From positions 806,001-870,000 of the forward strand of contig OZ251234.1 in assembly GCA_965240325.2 (NCBI GenBank): a stretch of 64,000 nucleotides of DNA. The letters run 5' to 3'. The notes beneath the pieces were generated by a model that ran no database searches, was not told the origin of the DNA, and worked only from the letters and a program-made list of their open reading frames with translations. The translations under genes were made by a program, and so were the position numbers. Below are positions 55,876 through 64,000 of this stretch, piece by piece (within the stretch, counting starts at the first letter, position 1; each line of letters starts with the position of its first letter). Origin of the DNA: Rebecca billardiae RCC1528. Taxonomy: Eukaryota > Protista > Haptophyta.

Positions 55876-58800
55876 TCATTCGAGCAGCCTATGCCCCCCG
55901 TCCCGCCCCGTCACGGTGCCCGGCGGCGGCGCCTGCCTCTCTGACGGGTGGCCAGCACCTCCCAGACCGAGATTGTGCTTGGCGCCGCCGGGCGCGCTCA
56001 CAGTAGAGGCGCGGTCGCGGGGCACACCGCGGCCACGCGCCGTCGTCACGTTGGCAAAAGCCAGCGGCGGACCTGCGGGGCTGCCGCCCACCGCGCCGCA
56101 CGCGTTCGCTCGCATCGAGCAGTTCTCGTCGCGACCGCCCTCTTCGGCCGACTCGGCATCCGAGCGCGCGGCGTCGGCGTCAGCCGCACGCGCCGGGCCG
56201 CGCGCGGGCGAGGCCGGGCACGACGTCGCGGCGCGCTCGACGCTCGCCTCCTGCGACCGCGCGCGCGCGGAGGGGGGGGGGGGGGGGTTCGCGCGAACGG
56301 GCGGCGTGATGAGCCGTGCCACGCGCCGCGTGCTGCCGTGCGCGCTCCGCGCCCCGAGCCACATCGCGTACCCAGCGCCCCACGCATATGCCGCGCACCG
56401 CCGCACCGCGCGCCGCGCGCACCAGCTCGGCGACGCGCCGCTGCAGCCGCGCGAGCGCTCGGCTCTCGAGCCTGCGCGCCGGGTTGTTGACCACCAGCCG
56501 CGCGCGCGCGCCCAGCCCGAGCGTGCACAGCGTCTCGTCGCGGTCGCGCGCGCTGGGCGAGGCGGAGACGACGAGCAGGGCGCGCGCGCTGCCGCCCAGG
56601 CAGTCTCGGAGCAGGCAGGTCAGCTTGGCATTCCGATACGGCACGTGCGACTCCTGCGGCCGACGGGAGGCGCGCGCCGGCCGGGCGGACGGAGGCCGCG
56701 CGGCGTGAGACGCGTGCGCAGGCCCCGCGGTGAGACGCACAGGCTGGACGGACGTGCGTCTCAGCGGACGTGGGCGAGCGGGGCCGGCCGCGGCGCGAGT
56801 GGGGGTGCTGCCTGGGCACGCACGAGCCTTGCGCGCACCTTCTGTGCCAGTGCGCGCACGACGTCCGACAGCGCCGACAGCGAGCGGTTGATGGCCTGCG
56901 CCTCCTTGAGCTGAGCGCCGCCCGCGCCCGACCTACCGACGCGCTCGGCGCCCGCGAGGTCTGCGAAGAGAAGACGGCCGCGCGGCAGCGCGGCGGCGCC
57001 GGCGGCGTCGGGCGCGGGTGCGGCGTGCGGCGGCGCGCCCTCCTCCGCCGCGAAGCTCAGCGTGCACAGCACGTGCGAGCGCGAGGACTCGGCGTTCATG
57101 GCGGTCGCGCCGACCGCGCGCCGCCGCAGCGCGCCGCCGACCAGCGCAATCAGCTCACGCGCACTCGACGTGGGCGTGCGCGCGGCGCCGCGCACGTGCG
57201 CGCCGCCCCACGGGTCCTCCTTGATGGCGAGCGGCGCGGCGGCGGCGCCGGGCGCGAGCAGCAGGTCGTGCAGCACGTCGTTGTGCAGCTCGATCAGTGA
57301 GACGAAGACGCGCGCCGCCGGCGGCGCGCGCGCGTCCGCGGCGGCGCCGCCCTCGGCCGTCGCGGCCGCGAGCGCGCGCGCCGCGGCCAGTCCGTCAAAG
57401 AGGCGCACGGCGGCGCGCGGCAGCAGCCCGGCGCCCTCGGCGAGGACGACGTCGTCGTGCGCCCCCGCCCGCTCCTCGAGCGCACCGCCCGCCTGCCCGA
57501 CCACCGTGTGCGTCTTGCCCGCGCCCGTCTGGCCGTAAGCCAGAACCCCGGCCGAATAGCCGTCCAGTGCGCCGTCGACGAGTGAGGCCACGCCTGCCGC
57601 CTCAAAGAAGCGTGCCTGGCTGACCTCCGGGCCGAGGGCGGCGGCGAACTCGAAGGACTGCGGCGGGACGAGCGTGGGCGTGTGCGGCGGCGGGAGCACC
57701 GTTGCCGAGTGCTCGTCGTCCACGCGCAGCGTGAGCGGCTCCGCCGCCTCCGCAGCGCCCACGGGCGGCCGCACTCGCAGCACGACACGGATGTTGCCGC
57801 GCGCGCGCTCGAGCGCAGCGGCGGCGTGCGCGCGCTTGCGCCGCTCGTCGCGCAGCGTGGAGCGGAGCGTGCCGAGCTGCGCGGACGCGGCGTCGGCGTG
57901 CTCGCGCGCGGACGCGGCCGCAGCCTCCTGCGCCGCGCGCGCCTCCGCCTCCGCCGATGCGGCGCGCGCCTGCGCCGCCTCGGCCGCCGCCTCCGCTCGC
58001 GCGGCGCGCGCCTCCGCCTCGGCCGCGGCCGAGCCCGCCTGCGCCGCGCGCGCCTCCGCCTCCGCCGAGGCGGCACGCGCCTGCTCCGCCGAGGATACCG
58101 CCTCTGCGCGTGCGGCGCGCGCCTCGGCCACCTCCGCCGCCGTCTCCTGAGCGGCGCGCGCCTCCGCCTCCGCCGACGCGGCGCGCGCCTGCGCCGCCTC
58201 GGCCGCCGCCTCCGCGCACGCGGCGCGCGCCTCGGCCTCGGCCGCGGCCGAGCCGGCCTGTGCCGCGCGCGCCTCCGCAGCCACGCACTCGTCCAAGGCC
58301 ACGCCGAGGGCGGCGCGCGCCTCGGCCGCGTCCTCCCGCGCCGCCTCGCGCGCACGCGCCGCCTCTGCCTGCGCCACCTCGGCGCTCCGCGCGTCGGCGT
58401 GGGTTCGCGCGCCGTCGCGCGCACACGGCAGTGCGCTCTCCGCGCGCGCGGCGCCCGAGTCCGCCTCCGCCGCGGCCTCCGCCGTCGGCGCGGCTTTGCT
58501 CGGGCCGGCGTACGCGCTCGGCGGCTCCGGCGAGGGCTGCGTGCCGCGCTCTACGCCGAGCGGCTGCGCTCCGGCTGCCCCACCGCGCGCGGCCGAGGCT
58601 GGCGGCGGCGGCTCGCGCGGCGGCGCGGCGCGCTCGGCAGCGGGTGAGGAGGAGACGGCGGCGGCCGCGCTCAGCGCGGCGCCGAGCGCGCGCGCGGGCG
58701 ACGGGCGCGGCCGCTCGTCGGGCGCCGACGGCGGGCTGCCCGCGTCGATGAGCGCCGGGCTCTCCTGCCTCGCGCGCACGCGCGCCGCCGCCGACGCCGC

Positions 58801-60960
58801 GCGCGCCTCCGCCAGCTCCGCCTCGAGCCTAGCGATCTCGCGCTGCGCAGCTGACGCCTCAGCCTCATGCGCCGAGAGCGCGGTCGCTAGCATGGCCGCG
58901 CGCGCCTCGGCCGCGGCGAGCTGCGCGCGCGCCGCGTCGGCGTCGGCGCGCGGGTCGAGCGGCGTGGCGTCGTCGCGCGCGGCGCCGGAGCCCGCGCGCT
59001 CCGCGCCCGCCGCGCCCTCCCGCGCGCTCGCCAGCTGCGCCCGCGCCTCCGCCACCTCCCTGCAGACGCTATCTCGCGCAATCTCGAGACGGCGGATCTC
59101 GGCGCGCAGCCCAGACTGCACGGCGTGCGCGCGCACCGCGGCGGGCGTGGCGGAGACGGCGGAGGGCGTGAGCGGCGGCGGCGTGGGGAAGAGGCCCTTC
59201 CGCCGCGCCGACGACGGCGGCGTCGCCAGCGAGGTCGGCGGCAGCAGCGCGCCGAACCCACCGCCGCCACCGCCGCCGCCGCCGCCGCCACCGCCCGCGC
59301 CGGCAGTTGCCGCCGACGGCGCCGAGCCGTGCGCTGCGCCCGCCGGCGGGGGCGAGCCGGGCGGCGGGAGGACGGAGAGGCCGGCGCCCAGCGGCGGAGC
59401 CGCCGCCGCGCCCGCCGCAAACGCAGCTGCTGCGCTCGGTGCCGGCACCACCTCCGCCTCCGCGCGCGCGGGCGGCTGGCCAACGTCGCGCGCGGCCGCA
59501 GCCACGCTCGTCGCGGCCGCGCGCGCGCGCGCGGCCGCAGCCTCGTCCGCGGCCGTGCGGCGCAGCAGGTGCTGCCCGAAGGCCTCGCGCTGCGTGAAGG
59601 CCTCGGAAGGGAGCGCGAGCGGCGCGGCGCCGCTCAGCGCGAGCGCGCCCGCCGAGGCGAGCGCCGACGCCGCCGGACCCAACGGCGCGGGCCTTAGGAC
59701 ATTTCCGTAACGGCCGCCGGCTGCACGAAGCCACGACTGAGGCAATCGCGCTGCTCGGCGCGCGCCGCCCTCGGCGGCTGTGCCGCCGGCGCCGTCCGGC
59801 GTGTCGGCGTGCGGCGCGTCGGCGTCGTGCGCCGCGCCGGTGGCGGGCGTGACCGCGCCACTCACCGCGCGCATCGCCTCCTCCGCCGCCGCCTCCGCGC
59901 CCTCGGCGCGCGCAGCCAGCGCCACGCACGCCTCGCGCGCCGCGTCCGCGTCCGCGCGCGCGCGCGCCGCCTCGGCCTCGGCCGCGCGCACCGCCGCCGT
60001 CGCGGCGGTGAGCTGCGCCTCGCGGTGCGCGGTGGACTCGAGCTGCACGGCGAGGGAGAGGTTGAGCGCCTGCGTCGACGCGAGCTCCGCGCGCACCGCC
60101 GCGAGCGCCGCGAGCACGCTCGACTCGCCGCCGCCGTCCGCGCCGCCGGCGGCGTCAGCCGTCGCCGACGCCGCCGCGGGCGAGGGGGGACGGGCCGCGC
60201 ACGCGCCGCGCGCGTCCGGCGTCGTGCGCGTGGGCGTGGGCGGCGCGAGGCTGGTCCGCGCCTCGCCCGCGCCCGCGCGCATCCCCGCGAGCTGCGCGCC
60301 CAGCCGCTGCGCCTCGAACCGCTCGCGCTGCAGCCCGAGCGCCCCCTCCAACTCCACATCCGTCAGCTCGAGCGCGAGCGCTCGCGCCTCGGCGCGCGCG
60401 CGCGCCTCGGCCGCGCCACCGAGCTCGGCGCGTGCGCGCTCGGCGTCGAGCGCGGCGCGGAGCTGCTCGGCGGCGTTGAGCGCGGCCTCGGCCTCCTCTC
60501 GCGCGTCGTCCAGCGCGCCGCTCTTCTCCGCCAGCTCCTCCTCCAGCGCGGCGCGCCTCGCCGCCTCCGCACGCGCGCGCACCACAACTTCCTCCGAGGA
60601 GCCGCCGGCGGCGCCGCCGTGCGACGCGCGCCCGCCGGCCGCGGTGGCGGGCCTGGGGCCGGCGGCGCCGCCCGTGGTGCGCAGCTGGCGCGTGAGCGCG
60701 TCGACCTGCGCGCGCAGCGCCGCGTTGATCGACGCGAGCGTCGCCGCCGACTCGTGCACGTTCGCAGACACGACGTTTTTGATCTTCTTGGCGCGTGCCG
60801 CGAACCGAAGCGTTGAGACGGTTTCGGCCATGTGTGCGCGCGCGGGCGAGCACGCGCACAGGAGCGTGGTCTTCGCGTTGCCGCCGAGGGACTCGGAGAG
60901 CAGCCGGGTGAGCTTCGAGTCGCGGTACGGCACGTGCGGCTGAACCACGCACGCGCGCAC

Positions 60961-60991
<31 letters not shown>

Positions 60992-61928
60992 ATGTCAGCG
61001 CTGCACGGGCGACTCGCGTTCGCGCGGCGCGGGCGACGCGCGCGCGCACCTTGCCGTCGGCGAGGGCGGAGATGACGTTCCCGAGCGCGGAGAGCGAGCG
61101 GTTGATGTTCTGCGCCTCCGCAAGCGTCTGCCCCTCCGCGCCCGTCTGCCGCACCTTCTCGCACCCCGCGAGGTCGACGGCGTTCAGCAGGCCTTCCTTA
61201 GCGGAGCCATCCGGCAGCGTCGCGCGCACCACGAGCGAAAAGATCGAGTGTGAGCGCGAGGAGTGCTCGTTCATGCGCGTGGCGGAGACGGCGCGCGCGG
61301 CGTTGCCCAGCCGCACGAGCGAGAGCACCTCCGACTCCGAGCCGACGTACACCGTCGTCACGTCCTTGGCGAAGACGCCGCGCTCCGCCGACTCGGCAAT
61401 CTTGAGATTCTCCTTGGAAGGATCGAGCAGGTCGCGGACCTTCTCGTTGTAGATCTCGACGTACGAGCACGAGATGAGGTACGACGCGCCGCGCGTGTCC
61501 GATCGGATCGCGCTGAACACCTGCGCCGTCACGCGCGGCAGCACGCCCGCCGCGCCCGCGGCGGACACGTCGGAGACGTCCTGACCGTACATGGTGAAGG
61601 TCTTCCCGCTGCCCGTCTGCCCGTACGCCATGAAGGTGGCGTTGAAGCCCGAGCACACGTCGGCGGCGAGCGGCTCGGCCGCCTCAGCGTACACGTCCAG
61701 CTGGCTCGCGTCCGGGCCGAACACGTGGTCGAGCGTGAACTGCTCGCGCGCGCTGTCCGCGTCGAGCACGACGCGCCGAGACGACGCGTCGAGCTCGAGC
61801 CCGAGCACGTCCTCGGGGCGGCCGGCGGCCTCGCGCTCGGACGGCGGGCGGAAGCGGGCGACGACTCGCACGCTGCACGCCGTGGACGTCGAGCCGCCCG
61901 CAGTCGGCGGTGTGGTGCCCTTGGCCAT
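55876..61928 (-). CDS. Kinesin with two motor domains (N-terminal kinesin-1-like and C-terminal kinesin-14-like) joined by an Ala-rich coiled-coil stalk
   Basis: Motor 1: [39 protein letters not shown]. Motor 2: [42 protein letters not shown]. Predicted GT-AG introns 60940-61049, 56654-56838 and ~56251-56422. Confidence 0.85.
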
Positions 61929-62346: not shown

Positions 62347-64000
62347 ATGGGCGACCGCAGCGCCGTCCCGCTGGACCCGCTTCCCGATGCGCTCCCGCTC
62401 GCCGACACCTTCGTCCCGCCGCCGCCGATCAGCGTGCCCACGAGCGCTCACGCGGAGCGCGCCGAGAAGCGCGCCGTGCTCTTCACCGCCGCCGAGGATG
62501 GCTCGGGCGCGCCCGCGTTGAAGCGGCTTCGGCCGCTGCAGCTGGACACGGAGCTCGCGCTGATCGAGTCAGGCGCCACCGTCGACTCGCCCTTCGCGCC
62601 GACCACGCCGGCGACGACCAAGGCGCGGCGTCGCACGCCGCTGCACGAGGCCATCGTGGCGGCGTCCGAGTCGGCGGTCGCCGCGGCGCTCGAGGTGGCG
62701 GCGAGCGTGCCCTCCGTGCTTGACGCGAAGGACGAGCACGGGCACACGCCGCTGATCACCGCCGCCAGCCTCGAGGCCTCCGACGGCCTCCCGGCGCGGC
62801 TCGTGCGCATGCTGCTCGAGCGCGGCGCGAGCGCCGACACATCCGACGAGAGCGGGTACACGGCGATGCACTGGGCGGCGGCGCTGGGCCACGTGGGCGT
62901 GGTGCAGCTGCTCGCCGAGTCGAGCGCGCCGCTCGAGGCGCGCTCGAACGCGGGCGAGACGCCGCTCCACCGCGCCAGCCGGCTCGGCCACGCCGAGTGC
63001 GTGCGCGCCCTCGTGCGCGCGGGCGCGGACGTGCGCGCCCGCTCGCGGCGTTCCGAGGGCGCCGTGGAGGTGGCGGGGTGCTTCGAGGGGCGCGTGAACC
63101 CGAAGCTGCGGCAGAGCACGCTGCGCGCGCTCGTGCAGTGCGCGCCCGTGCTGCGCACCCTCGTCCTCTCGCACCCGGACTGCCAGCTGCACGCCACGCG
63201 GCCCGGCCACCAGGAGGCGCCGGGGAGAATCGGCGCGATCATGTCCAAGCTCACCTCCGCGCGCATCTTCGACAAGAGCGAGCTGAGCTGCCAGGCGGAG
63301 TTCGAGCCGGCGACGCGCGAGGCGCTGCTGCGCGTGCACTCCGCCGGCTACGTCGACTCGGTCTTCACCCTCGCCGCCTCGCTCGAGCGGCACCGGCTGA
63401 GCGCGCCGGTCGCCTTCACCCCGCACGTGCAGCACGCGCACGCGGCCGGCGCGTCGCCCAACGGCGAGCTGGCGGGCGGCGGCGGCGGCGGCGGCGGGCG
63501 GCGCGGGGGCGAGCAGGCCGCGCGCGGCTTCGACGTCCAGGCCTACGCCGCCGAGCTCGCCAAGCTCCACGCGCGGGAGGCCGAGGCACTCGCCGCCGCC
63601 GAGCCGCCGCCGCCGGCCCGCGCCGGTGACAAGCCGTCTGCAAGCGCTGGGCGGCGTACCGCCTTGCACCCGGCCCTGGCCGACGGGCCGACGGCGAACG
63701 CGGGCAGGCGCGCCGCGGCGAACGCAGCGCGCAACGCCGAGCGGCAGGGCGGGCAGACCGCGCAGACCGGCACGCCGCCCCCGCCCGGCGGCGAGGCGGG
63801 CAGCTCGGGCGCGGCCAAGGCTGCGGGCGACATGCTGGCCCCCAGCGCCCCGGCCGCGCGCGCGGCGAGCGGCGCGCCGGGCACGGAGGACAGGCGCTCG
63901 GAGTGCGGCGGCGCCGGCGCGGCTGCCGCGCGAACCGACGCCAAGGACGAGCCGCCCGCGATGCCGCAGCTCATGTCGCAGGTCTCCTCCGACACGTCCT
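62347..64000 (+). CDS. Ankyrin-repeat class II histone deacetylase-like protein (runs off the window end; absent from the ORF track)
   Basis: Open frame from ATG 62347. Ankyrin repeats TPLHEA, GHTPLITAA, GYTAMHWAA, GETPLHRA. HDAC N-terminal motifs H..GHQEAPGRI and LLRVHSAGYV, with SSDTS at the window edge. Confidence 0.85.
   Translation, partial: MGDRSAVPLDPLPDALPLADTFVPPPPISVPTSAHAERAEKRAVLFTAAEDGSGAPALKRLRPLQLDTELALIESGATVDSPFAPTTPATTKARRRTPLHEAIVAASESAVAAALEVAASVPSVLDAKDEHGHTPLITAASLEASDGLPARLVRMLLERGASADTSDESGYTAMHWAAALGHVGVVQLLAESSAPLEARSNAGETPLHRASRLGHAECVRALVRAGADVRARSRRSEGAVEVAGCFEGRVNPKLRQSTLRALVQCAPVLRTLVLSHPDCQLHATRPGHQEAPGRIGAIMSKLTSARIFDKSELSCQAEFEPATREALLRVHSAGYVDSVFTLAASLERHRLSAPVAFTPHVQHAHAAGASPNGELAGGGGGGGGRRGGEQAARGFDVQAYAAELAKLHAREAEALAAAEPPPPARAGDKPSASAGRRTALHPALADGPTANAGRRAAANAARNAERQGGQTAQTGTPPPPGGEAGSSGAAKAAGDMLAPSAPAARAASGAPGTEDRRSECGGAGAAAARTDAKDEPPAMPQLMSQVSSDTS

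Follow-up and report, generated by a model that had tools for sequence, protein, structure and literature searches.

A predicted kinesin with a motor domain at each end of one polypeptide chain

A 64,000-nucleotide stretch of contig OZ251234.1 (positions 806,001 to 870,000 of the forward strand; hereafter the window, to which coordinates without a prefix refer) carries two kinesin motor domains on its minus strand, linked by a long uninterrupted reading frame. On balance, we consider it probable that the region from 61928 to about 55876 is one gene of three to four exons, whose product is a kinesin of about 1,820-1,860 residues that has motors at both ends. Judging from the sequence, it is likely that both motors are made as a single polypeptide from one transcript. 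Whether both are active and of opposite polarity is, by analogy with their families, an even question.

Results

One open frame connects two kinesin motors

The gene region has a GC content of about 75-85%, and all its elements lie on the minus strand. Exon 1 (61050..61928) starts with an ATG at 61928 and spans 293 codons for the N-terminal part of the first motor (motor 1), including the P-loop GQTGSGKT (61599-61622), switch I and switch II (DLAGCE). Intron 1 (60940..61049; 110 nt, GT-AG, phase 0, AAG/GTGCGCGC...TTCAG/CC) is supported by a shift of the reading frame and by kinesin homology that carries on across it. Exon 2 (56839..60939) is open over 4,101 nt, or 1,367 codons, and runs from the end of motor 1 with its kinesin-1-type neck linker (60763..60939) through a stalk of 983 residues (57814..60762) into the N-terminal part of the second motor (motor 2, 56839..57798), reaching helix alpha-4. 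Motor 2 starts at a GNIRV junction (57784-57798), has its P-loop GQTGAGKT at 57511-57534, and also contains switch I and switch II (DLAGAE). A sequence-only reading of the window had described this 4.1-kb frame as containing the last part of motor 1 and the bulk of motor 2, and we found it at the same coordinates; the intact P-loop, switch I and switch II that it had attributed to both motors can all be read in the spliced translation.

Intron 2 (56654..56838; 185 nt, GT-AG, phase 0, AAG/GTGCGCGC...CCGCAG/GA) leads to exon 3 (56423..56653), which encodes the end of motor 2 and a neck mimic like that of KCBP. The remaining 3' part (55876..56422) is uncertain. Either exon 3 reads through to a stop at 56180, or an intron (56422-56251) is followed by a possible exon 4 of 124 codons (56250-55876) whose stop lies at 55876, and the predicted protein has 1,817 or about 1,861 residues accordingly. 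This tail is not conserved in L002, one of the two relative contigs described below. A scan for the donor motif cannot mark introns, as GTGCGCGC is also found within conserved coding sequence, where it reads Val-Arg-Ala; the third intron therefore stays uncertain.

Introns 1 and 2 interrupt the two motors at the same position, just before (P/S)HVPYR, and have the identical donor AAG/GTGCGCGC. The intron at the motor-2 position is also present in L002, and the motor-1 intron is absent from the other relative contig, L001. At least one other kinesin locus of this genome (C3:3367431-3368671) likewise breaks at about profile position 272. The shared position looks like an old intron site and not like a sign of recent duplication. 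Recent duplication as the origin of both motors, which the intron position could suggest, was ruled out on two grounds: the deepest split of the tree described below separates the motors, and that other locus breaks at the same profile position.

The N-terminal motor resembles kinesin-1

The kinesin motor profile PF00225 matches the open reading frame (ORF) at 60363-61928(-) over profile positions 1-272 (E 6e-78, 262 bits), and the remainder of the profile is found in exon 2. Beyond its P-loop and DLAGCE, motor 1 has NEHSSRSH, RxRP and, for microtubule binding, an L12/alpha-5 motif of the HVPYR(D/N)(S/A)KLT type. Among solved structures, both parts of the motor match kinesin-1 best, namely Neurospora KHC (1goj, 238 and 76 bits), followed for the second part by other KHC/KIF5 chains; kinesin-1 matches lead those of kinesin-2 and kinesin-12 by 46 bits. 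The alignment to 1goj and 3kin extends through the neck linker, behind which a helix is predicted at residues 349-383. We found no IAK autoinhibitory motif in the whole protein and no match to a kinesin-1 tail domain in the Pfam scan. Motor 1 is thus classed, on these alignments, as an N-terminal, kinesin-1-like motor with a neck linker.

The C-terminal motor belongs with kinesin-14

PF00225 matches two stretches of the ORF at 56761-61164(-), the better of which (residues 1159-1442 in that frame, profile 31-272, 238 bits) belongs to motor 2. The last exon of this motor is matched in the ORF at 56180-56740(-), over profile positions 272-326 (52 bits). Motor 2 also has NAESSRSH, RxRP and HVPYR. 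Directly before it lies a kinesin-14-type neck at residues 1336-1345, with the GNIRV junction. Its best solved matches are KCBP and KIFC3, both kinesin-14s, and its last exon aligns best to KCBP (3h4s and 1sdm) through the neck mimic that follows helix alpha-6, where it pairs with the KCBP sequence RTIVNDPSKHISSKEMVRLKKLVA. Beyond that point come the uncertain intron and the end of L002 conservation, and a calmodulin-binding helix is not clearly present after motor 2. MyTH4 and FERM domains were not found: a Pfam scan of all exons returned kinesin and Microtub_bd families alone. When motor 2 alone was used as the query, it retrieved ordinary kinesin-14s at 32-35% identity, with KIF25 among the best short matches, and this search found no further ortholog.

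We placed both motors in a maximum-likelihood tree of 76 motor domains, from which P0107 and P0096 (very long rows) and the partial motor of the C13 gene described below were left out. All N-terminal motors (48/48) together with motor 1 are split from all C-terminal and internal motors together with motor 2, with an ultrafast bootstrap of 99 and a Shimodaira-Hasegawa-like approximate likelihood ratio test (SH-aLRT) of 99, and a quick tree agrees with this split. The kinesin-14 side includes a MyTH4-FERM protein of KCBP type (P0003), a CH-domain protein (P0120) and a protein named KIN14F (P0040). Motor 1 sits among the N-terminal motors of this tree, which has no labelled kinesin-1 references. 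By this phylogeny motor 2 belongs to the kinesin-14 clade, where its place is not fixed, since it shares a long stem and an unusual composition with its ortholog; and, on the same phylogenetic grounds, neither motor is a recent duplicate of the other. The sequence-only reading had proposed a kinesin-1-like motor at the N-terminus and a kinesin-14 neck in front of the second motor. The structural matches bear out the former, and the neck residues, the GN junction and the clade placement uphold the latter.

The stalk frame is more open than its composition explains

GC-rich DNA gives long ORFs in every frame, and we therefore compared the stalk with shuffled sequences. Over its 983 codons (57814-60762, GC 0.83) the stalk frame has 0 stops, and the other five frames have 7, 5, 4, 3 and 10. 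Stop-free frames arose in 7/5000 mononucleotide shuffles and in 5/5000 shuffles that preserve codon position, with a mean of 7 stops, so that about 0.1% were open. The open stalk frame exceeds what GC-richness explains.

Other features of the frame can be set beside this result. GC at third codon positions (GC3, 0.85-0.98) is higher than at second positions (GC2, 0.54-0.85) in every window of exon 2, and the closest stalk window has 0.89 vs 0.85. The contrast is weaker at about 59900-59100, but the most conserved stalk motifs fall exactly there, which establishes this part as coding. The lowest 100-nt GC within the stalk is at least 0.72, and the 3' flank falls to 0.50-0.64. The main tandem arrays repeat at periods divisible by three. 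In-frame methionines occur in the stalk only at residues 513, 649 and 976, with none between 976 and motor 2. With so few of them, motor 2 as a gene of its own would need a start codon within sequence that in L001 shares the open frame of motor 1.

Relatives carry the stalk joined to either motor

A word search returned two clearly closer proteins, both from Logan assemblies: P0001 (994 aa, on L001, sample SRR30664515) and P0002 (1,492 aa, on L002, sample DRR621826). P0001 is 48.6% identical to residues 17-755, in an alignment of 769 residues that takes in motor 1 and the first 400 residues of the stalk, and weaker collinear similarity continues to about residue 990. Its start matches the ATG of the window gene, which confirms the start codon at 61928. 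The neighbour upstream of the window gene (62536-63570, plus strand) is divergently transcribed and encodes a protein with ankyrin repeats and the beginning of a histone-deacetylase domain. This neighbour is kept beside the L001 gene (53% identity over 398 residues), and the L001 locus is orthologous on account of it. At its 3' end L001 has, after a possible donor, lower-GC sequence with stops in all frames, which is either an intron or the end of the gene.

P0002 is 48.6% identical to residues 568-753 and 46% identical to motor 2, and the next exon of L002 matches the end of motor 2 at 68.5% identity over 89 residues. An upstream exon (L002:27-368) is collinear with residues 412-503, with a score of 187 vs 69 +/- 9 for shuffles (z = 13). 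L001 (stalk and motor 1) and L002 (stalk and motor 2) thereby overlap on about 480 residues. As read from these alignments, the stalk of about 1,000 residues is a conserved protein sequence in two other organisms. The same architecture was thus met in relatives by halves: the stalk is joined to motor 1 in L001 and to motor 2 in L002, and the two motors were not found together on any relative contig.

A helical stalk with a conserved module and a candidate dimerising neck

Seven helices are predicted in a single-sequence AlphaFold model of the stalk (residues 349-383, 408-514, 567-661, 743-776, 885-945, 956-1019 and 1130-1347), with low-confidence hinges between them; the last one runs, in the model, unbroken into the GN junction. 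In the middle of the stalk lies a conserved module (59548..60135, minus strand; residues ~562-757; alignments A1 and A2) with the invariant motifs RAELA..N..L..LE..AH.E..LT, SWL..G..GNV.RPAP.GP and PLA.P..AF...E.FGQH.LR. This genome has one copy of it. With this module as the query, a profile search among 1.84 billion representative proteins matched P0001 and P0002 only, a word search matched P0002 only, and a look-up in the ESM Atlas gave low recognition and hypothetical clusters only.

Directly upstream of the neck of motor 2, five tandem copies of a 69-nt (23-codon) unit (57915..58266, minus strand) encode an Ala/Glu-rich helix (AEAEARAAQ..), which suggests that the length of the stalk changes through repeat expansion. 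The stalk also has 13 glycines from a (GGC)n run at 59261-59295.

In a model, the neck and adjoining stalk helix of motor 2 (57799..58122, minus strand; residues 1233-1340) form a parallel, in-register coiled coil that extends up to the motor. The homodimer model of residues 1230-1660 scored 0.38, and the best of 3 controls scored 0.01; the mark used for this score is reached by 21/30 proteins solved as same-chain pairs and by 0/23 solved as single chains. At least 90% of contacts agree across three runs, the partner pLDDT (predicted local distance difference test) is at least 66, and residue i pairs with residue i over 1233-1340. As the tool itself cautions, a pass of this kind may reflect its memory of solved relatives. 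With that caution, the model supports a neck of motor 2 that would dimerise as a parallel coiled coil, as known kinesin-14 necks do.

A second gene with kinesin domains at both ends

Elsewhere in the genome, a gene at G000:C13:2367087-2373251 (-), equivalent to L003:3088-9252 (-) and continuing to C13:2366315, has a kinesin domain at both ends of an open frame of 2,054 codons with moderate GC. The kinesin-like domain at the N-terminus is degenerate, with GQAGAGTT, no SSRSH and VVDLAPPP (no DLAGxE). The stalk contains TPR (527-595) and VHS (829-935) domains and long coiled coils, and the C-terminus has a canonical kinesin-14 neck and motor (..ALHNQLQEMVGNLRVYCRVRPP, GQSGSGKT). The C13 protein thus shares with the window protein an N-terminal kinesin-like domain and a C-terminal kinesin-14 motor in one open frame, but its N-terminal domain is dead and its TPR/VHS stalk lacks the mid-stalk module, and it is not a close paralog. 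By its predicted domains, the two-ended kinesin architecture recurs in this organism, and the C13 gene indicates that one end can decay, probably to an anchor.

The assembly spans 72 Mb in 41 contigs and gives about 108 matches to the kinesin profile from about 60 loci. It also has at least 51 matches to light-harvesting proteins, from which we take the organism to be a photosynthetic alga. Kinesin loci occur as pairs with identical profile scores at G000:C5:3200054-3205349 (+) and G000:C8:2391464-2403496 (-), 4.3 kb and 11 kb apart respectively; from these scores they are probably recent tandem duplicates.

Discussion

How might such a protein work? In N-kinesins a parallel coiled coil bears the heads at its N-terminus, and in kinesin-14s at its C-terminus. 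Because of this arrangement, one parallel homodimer of the window protein would carry both pairs of heads, two plus-end heads at one end and two minus-end heads at the other. The head pairs would be separated by a hinged rod whose helical parts alone would measure about 90 nm. From the behaviour of the two families, the kinesin-1-like end would be expected to be plus-end directed and the kinesin-14 end minus-end directed. Between two microtubules of the same orientation the ends would walk apart, and the pair would be slid or strained; between antiparallel microtubules both ends would travel one way and no sliding would result, the reverse of kinesin-5. On a single microtubule, in the absence of regulation, the two ends would pull against each other; folding at the hinges or the conserved module might provide such control. 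The hinges and the mid-stalk module probably serve regulation or cargo binding, and the KCBP-like C-terminal region might give calcium control. Sliding of parallel microtubules is a task otherwise known from dyneins. The full proposal, a four-headed kinesin with ends of opposite polarity that slides parallel microtubules and thereby bends or coils non-axonemal bundles such as flagellar roots (or the haptonema, if the organism is a haptophyte), is one that we put forward as a speculation with a rather small chance of being right.

Several observations weigh against a two-motor chain of this kind. Motor 2 is divergent with expanded loops, and it has a long branch, an odd composition and just 115 bits against its best solved relative. 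The serine of switch II is replaced in both motors (DLAGCE at residues 252-257, DLAGAE at 1620-1625); the orthologs P0001 and P0002 both retain DLAGSE. The stalk is 35% alanine, and its AlphaFold model is largely of low confidence, with a mean pLDDT of 56. No single relative contig holds both motors, as L001 comes to its end, or to an intron, near residue 900 and L002 begins at about residue 412. The gene may contain an internal promoter or polyadenylation site. Finally, directionality, dimerisation and sliding are projected here from knowledge of the kinesin families.

These points bear on different alternatives. The locus might consist of two adjacent same-strand genes, one kinesin-1-like and one kinesin-14-like, whose connecting frame is open by chance in DNA of 83% GC and which are read as separate transcripts or parted by an unrecognised intron that shifts the first gene to a stop. 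Spurious long ORFs are indeed expected in such DNA, and other frames here reach 300-400 codons. The GC3 periodicity weakens at about 59900-59100, and P0001, of 994 residues, terminates in a tail that is non-homologous and lies in sequence of lower GC. But zero stops in 983 codons occur in about 0.1% of shuffles, the zone of weak periodicity has the most conserved stalk motifs, and an in-frame stalk follows motor 1 in L001 and precedes motor 2 in L002. Moreover, there is no in-frame ATG from residue 976 to motor 2 and no GC dip within the stalk. We regard two separate genes as improbable. An artefact of assembly or annotation that joined two loci is extremely improbable: we found no point in its favour, the sequence is continuous within one contig of the 41-contig assembly, independent assemblies of two other samples show the junction on each side of the stalk, and the upstream neighbour gene is syntenic.

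A different possibility accepts the single polypeptide and gives it one working motor, the other kinesin domain being a regulated microtubule anchor or brake, comparable to the passive tail of ordinary kinesin-14s, so that the protein would be a conventional cross-linker. We hold this to be unlikely, yet keep it in view mainly because the N-terminal domain of the C13 gene has decayed, with loss of its P-loop, switch I and switch II; the divergence of motor 2 with its expanded loops and the replaced switch II serine of both motors point the same way. Against it, the P-loop, NxxSSRSH, DxxGxE, RxRP and HVPYR are kept in both motors of the window protein, and the motifs are also kept in P0001 and P0002, which argues for selection on ATPase activity at both ends.

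To our knowledge, every characterised kinesin has one motor per chain, and bipolar action is achieved by assembly of chains, as in kinesin-5, or by a passive second microtubule-binding site, as in kinesin-14. In a search of full-text literature we found no description of a natural kinesin chain with two motors, and unverified database gene models of this kind may exist. Two kinesin phylogenies make no mention of two-motor chains (PMC1434745; PMC2867816).

Like kinesin-1, the predicted two-motor protein of the window has an N-terminal motor, a neck linker resembling that of kinesin-1 (AKSIKNKAKVNAELS) and then a helix. Unlike kinesin-1, it has neither IAK nor a recognisable tail, and its unrelated stalk ends in a second motor. 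With the kinesin-14s KCBP, KIF25 and Ncd it shares a C-terminal motor and a long helix that leads straight into G-N-I-R-V, and its alignment to KCBP includes the neck mimic. It differs from KCBP in having no MyTH4/FERM, and from kinesin-14s in general at the N-terminus, where these have a passive tail that binds microtubules or cargo and the window protein has a complete second motor. In Kar3-Vik1 and Kar3-Cik1, a kinesin-14 motor is paired with a second kinesin-fold domain that binds microtubules. In contrast to the window protein, this second domain belongs to a separate polypeptide, is found at the same coiled-coil end as the motor and lacks a nucleotide site.

In function, kinesin-5 (Eg5, KLP61F) comes closest: it has four heads in pairs at opposite ends of a rod and can cross-link two microtubules, as the window protein would. 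Kinesin-5 is built from four identical single-motor chains in antiparallel arrangement, so that its two ends do not differ in polarity, and it slides antiparallel microtubules; the window protein would instead combine two different motors per chain in a parallel dimer, with a preference for parallel microtubules. If this holds true, a fusion of two motor genes occurred and was kept in at least three related organisms, and the protein offers a natural experiment on the tug-of-war between opposite motors, on how neck position sets direction and on the sliding of parallel microtubules by a kinesin. Its domains are familiar and their combination is new: compared with known systems, the predicted protein is a new domain architecture in a known superfamily.

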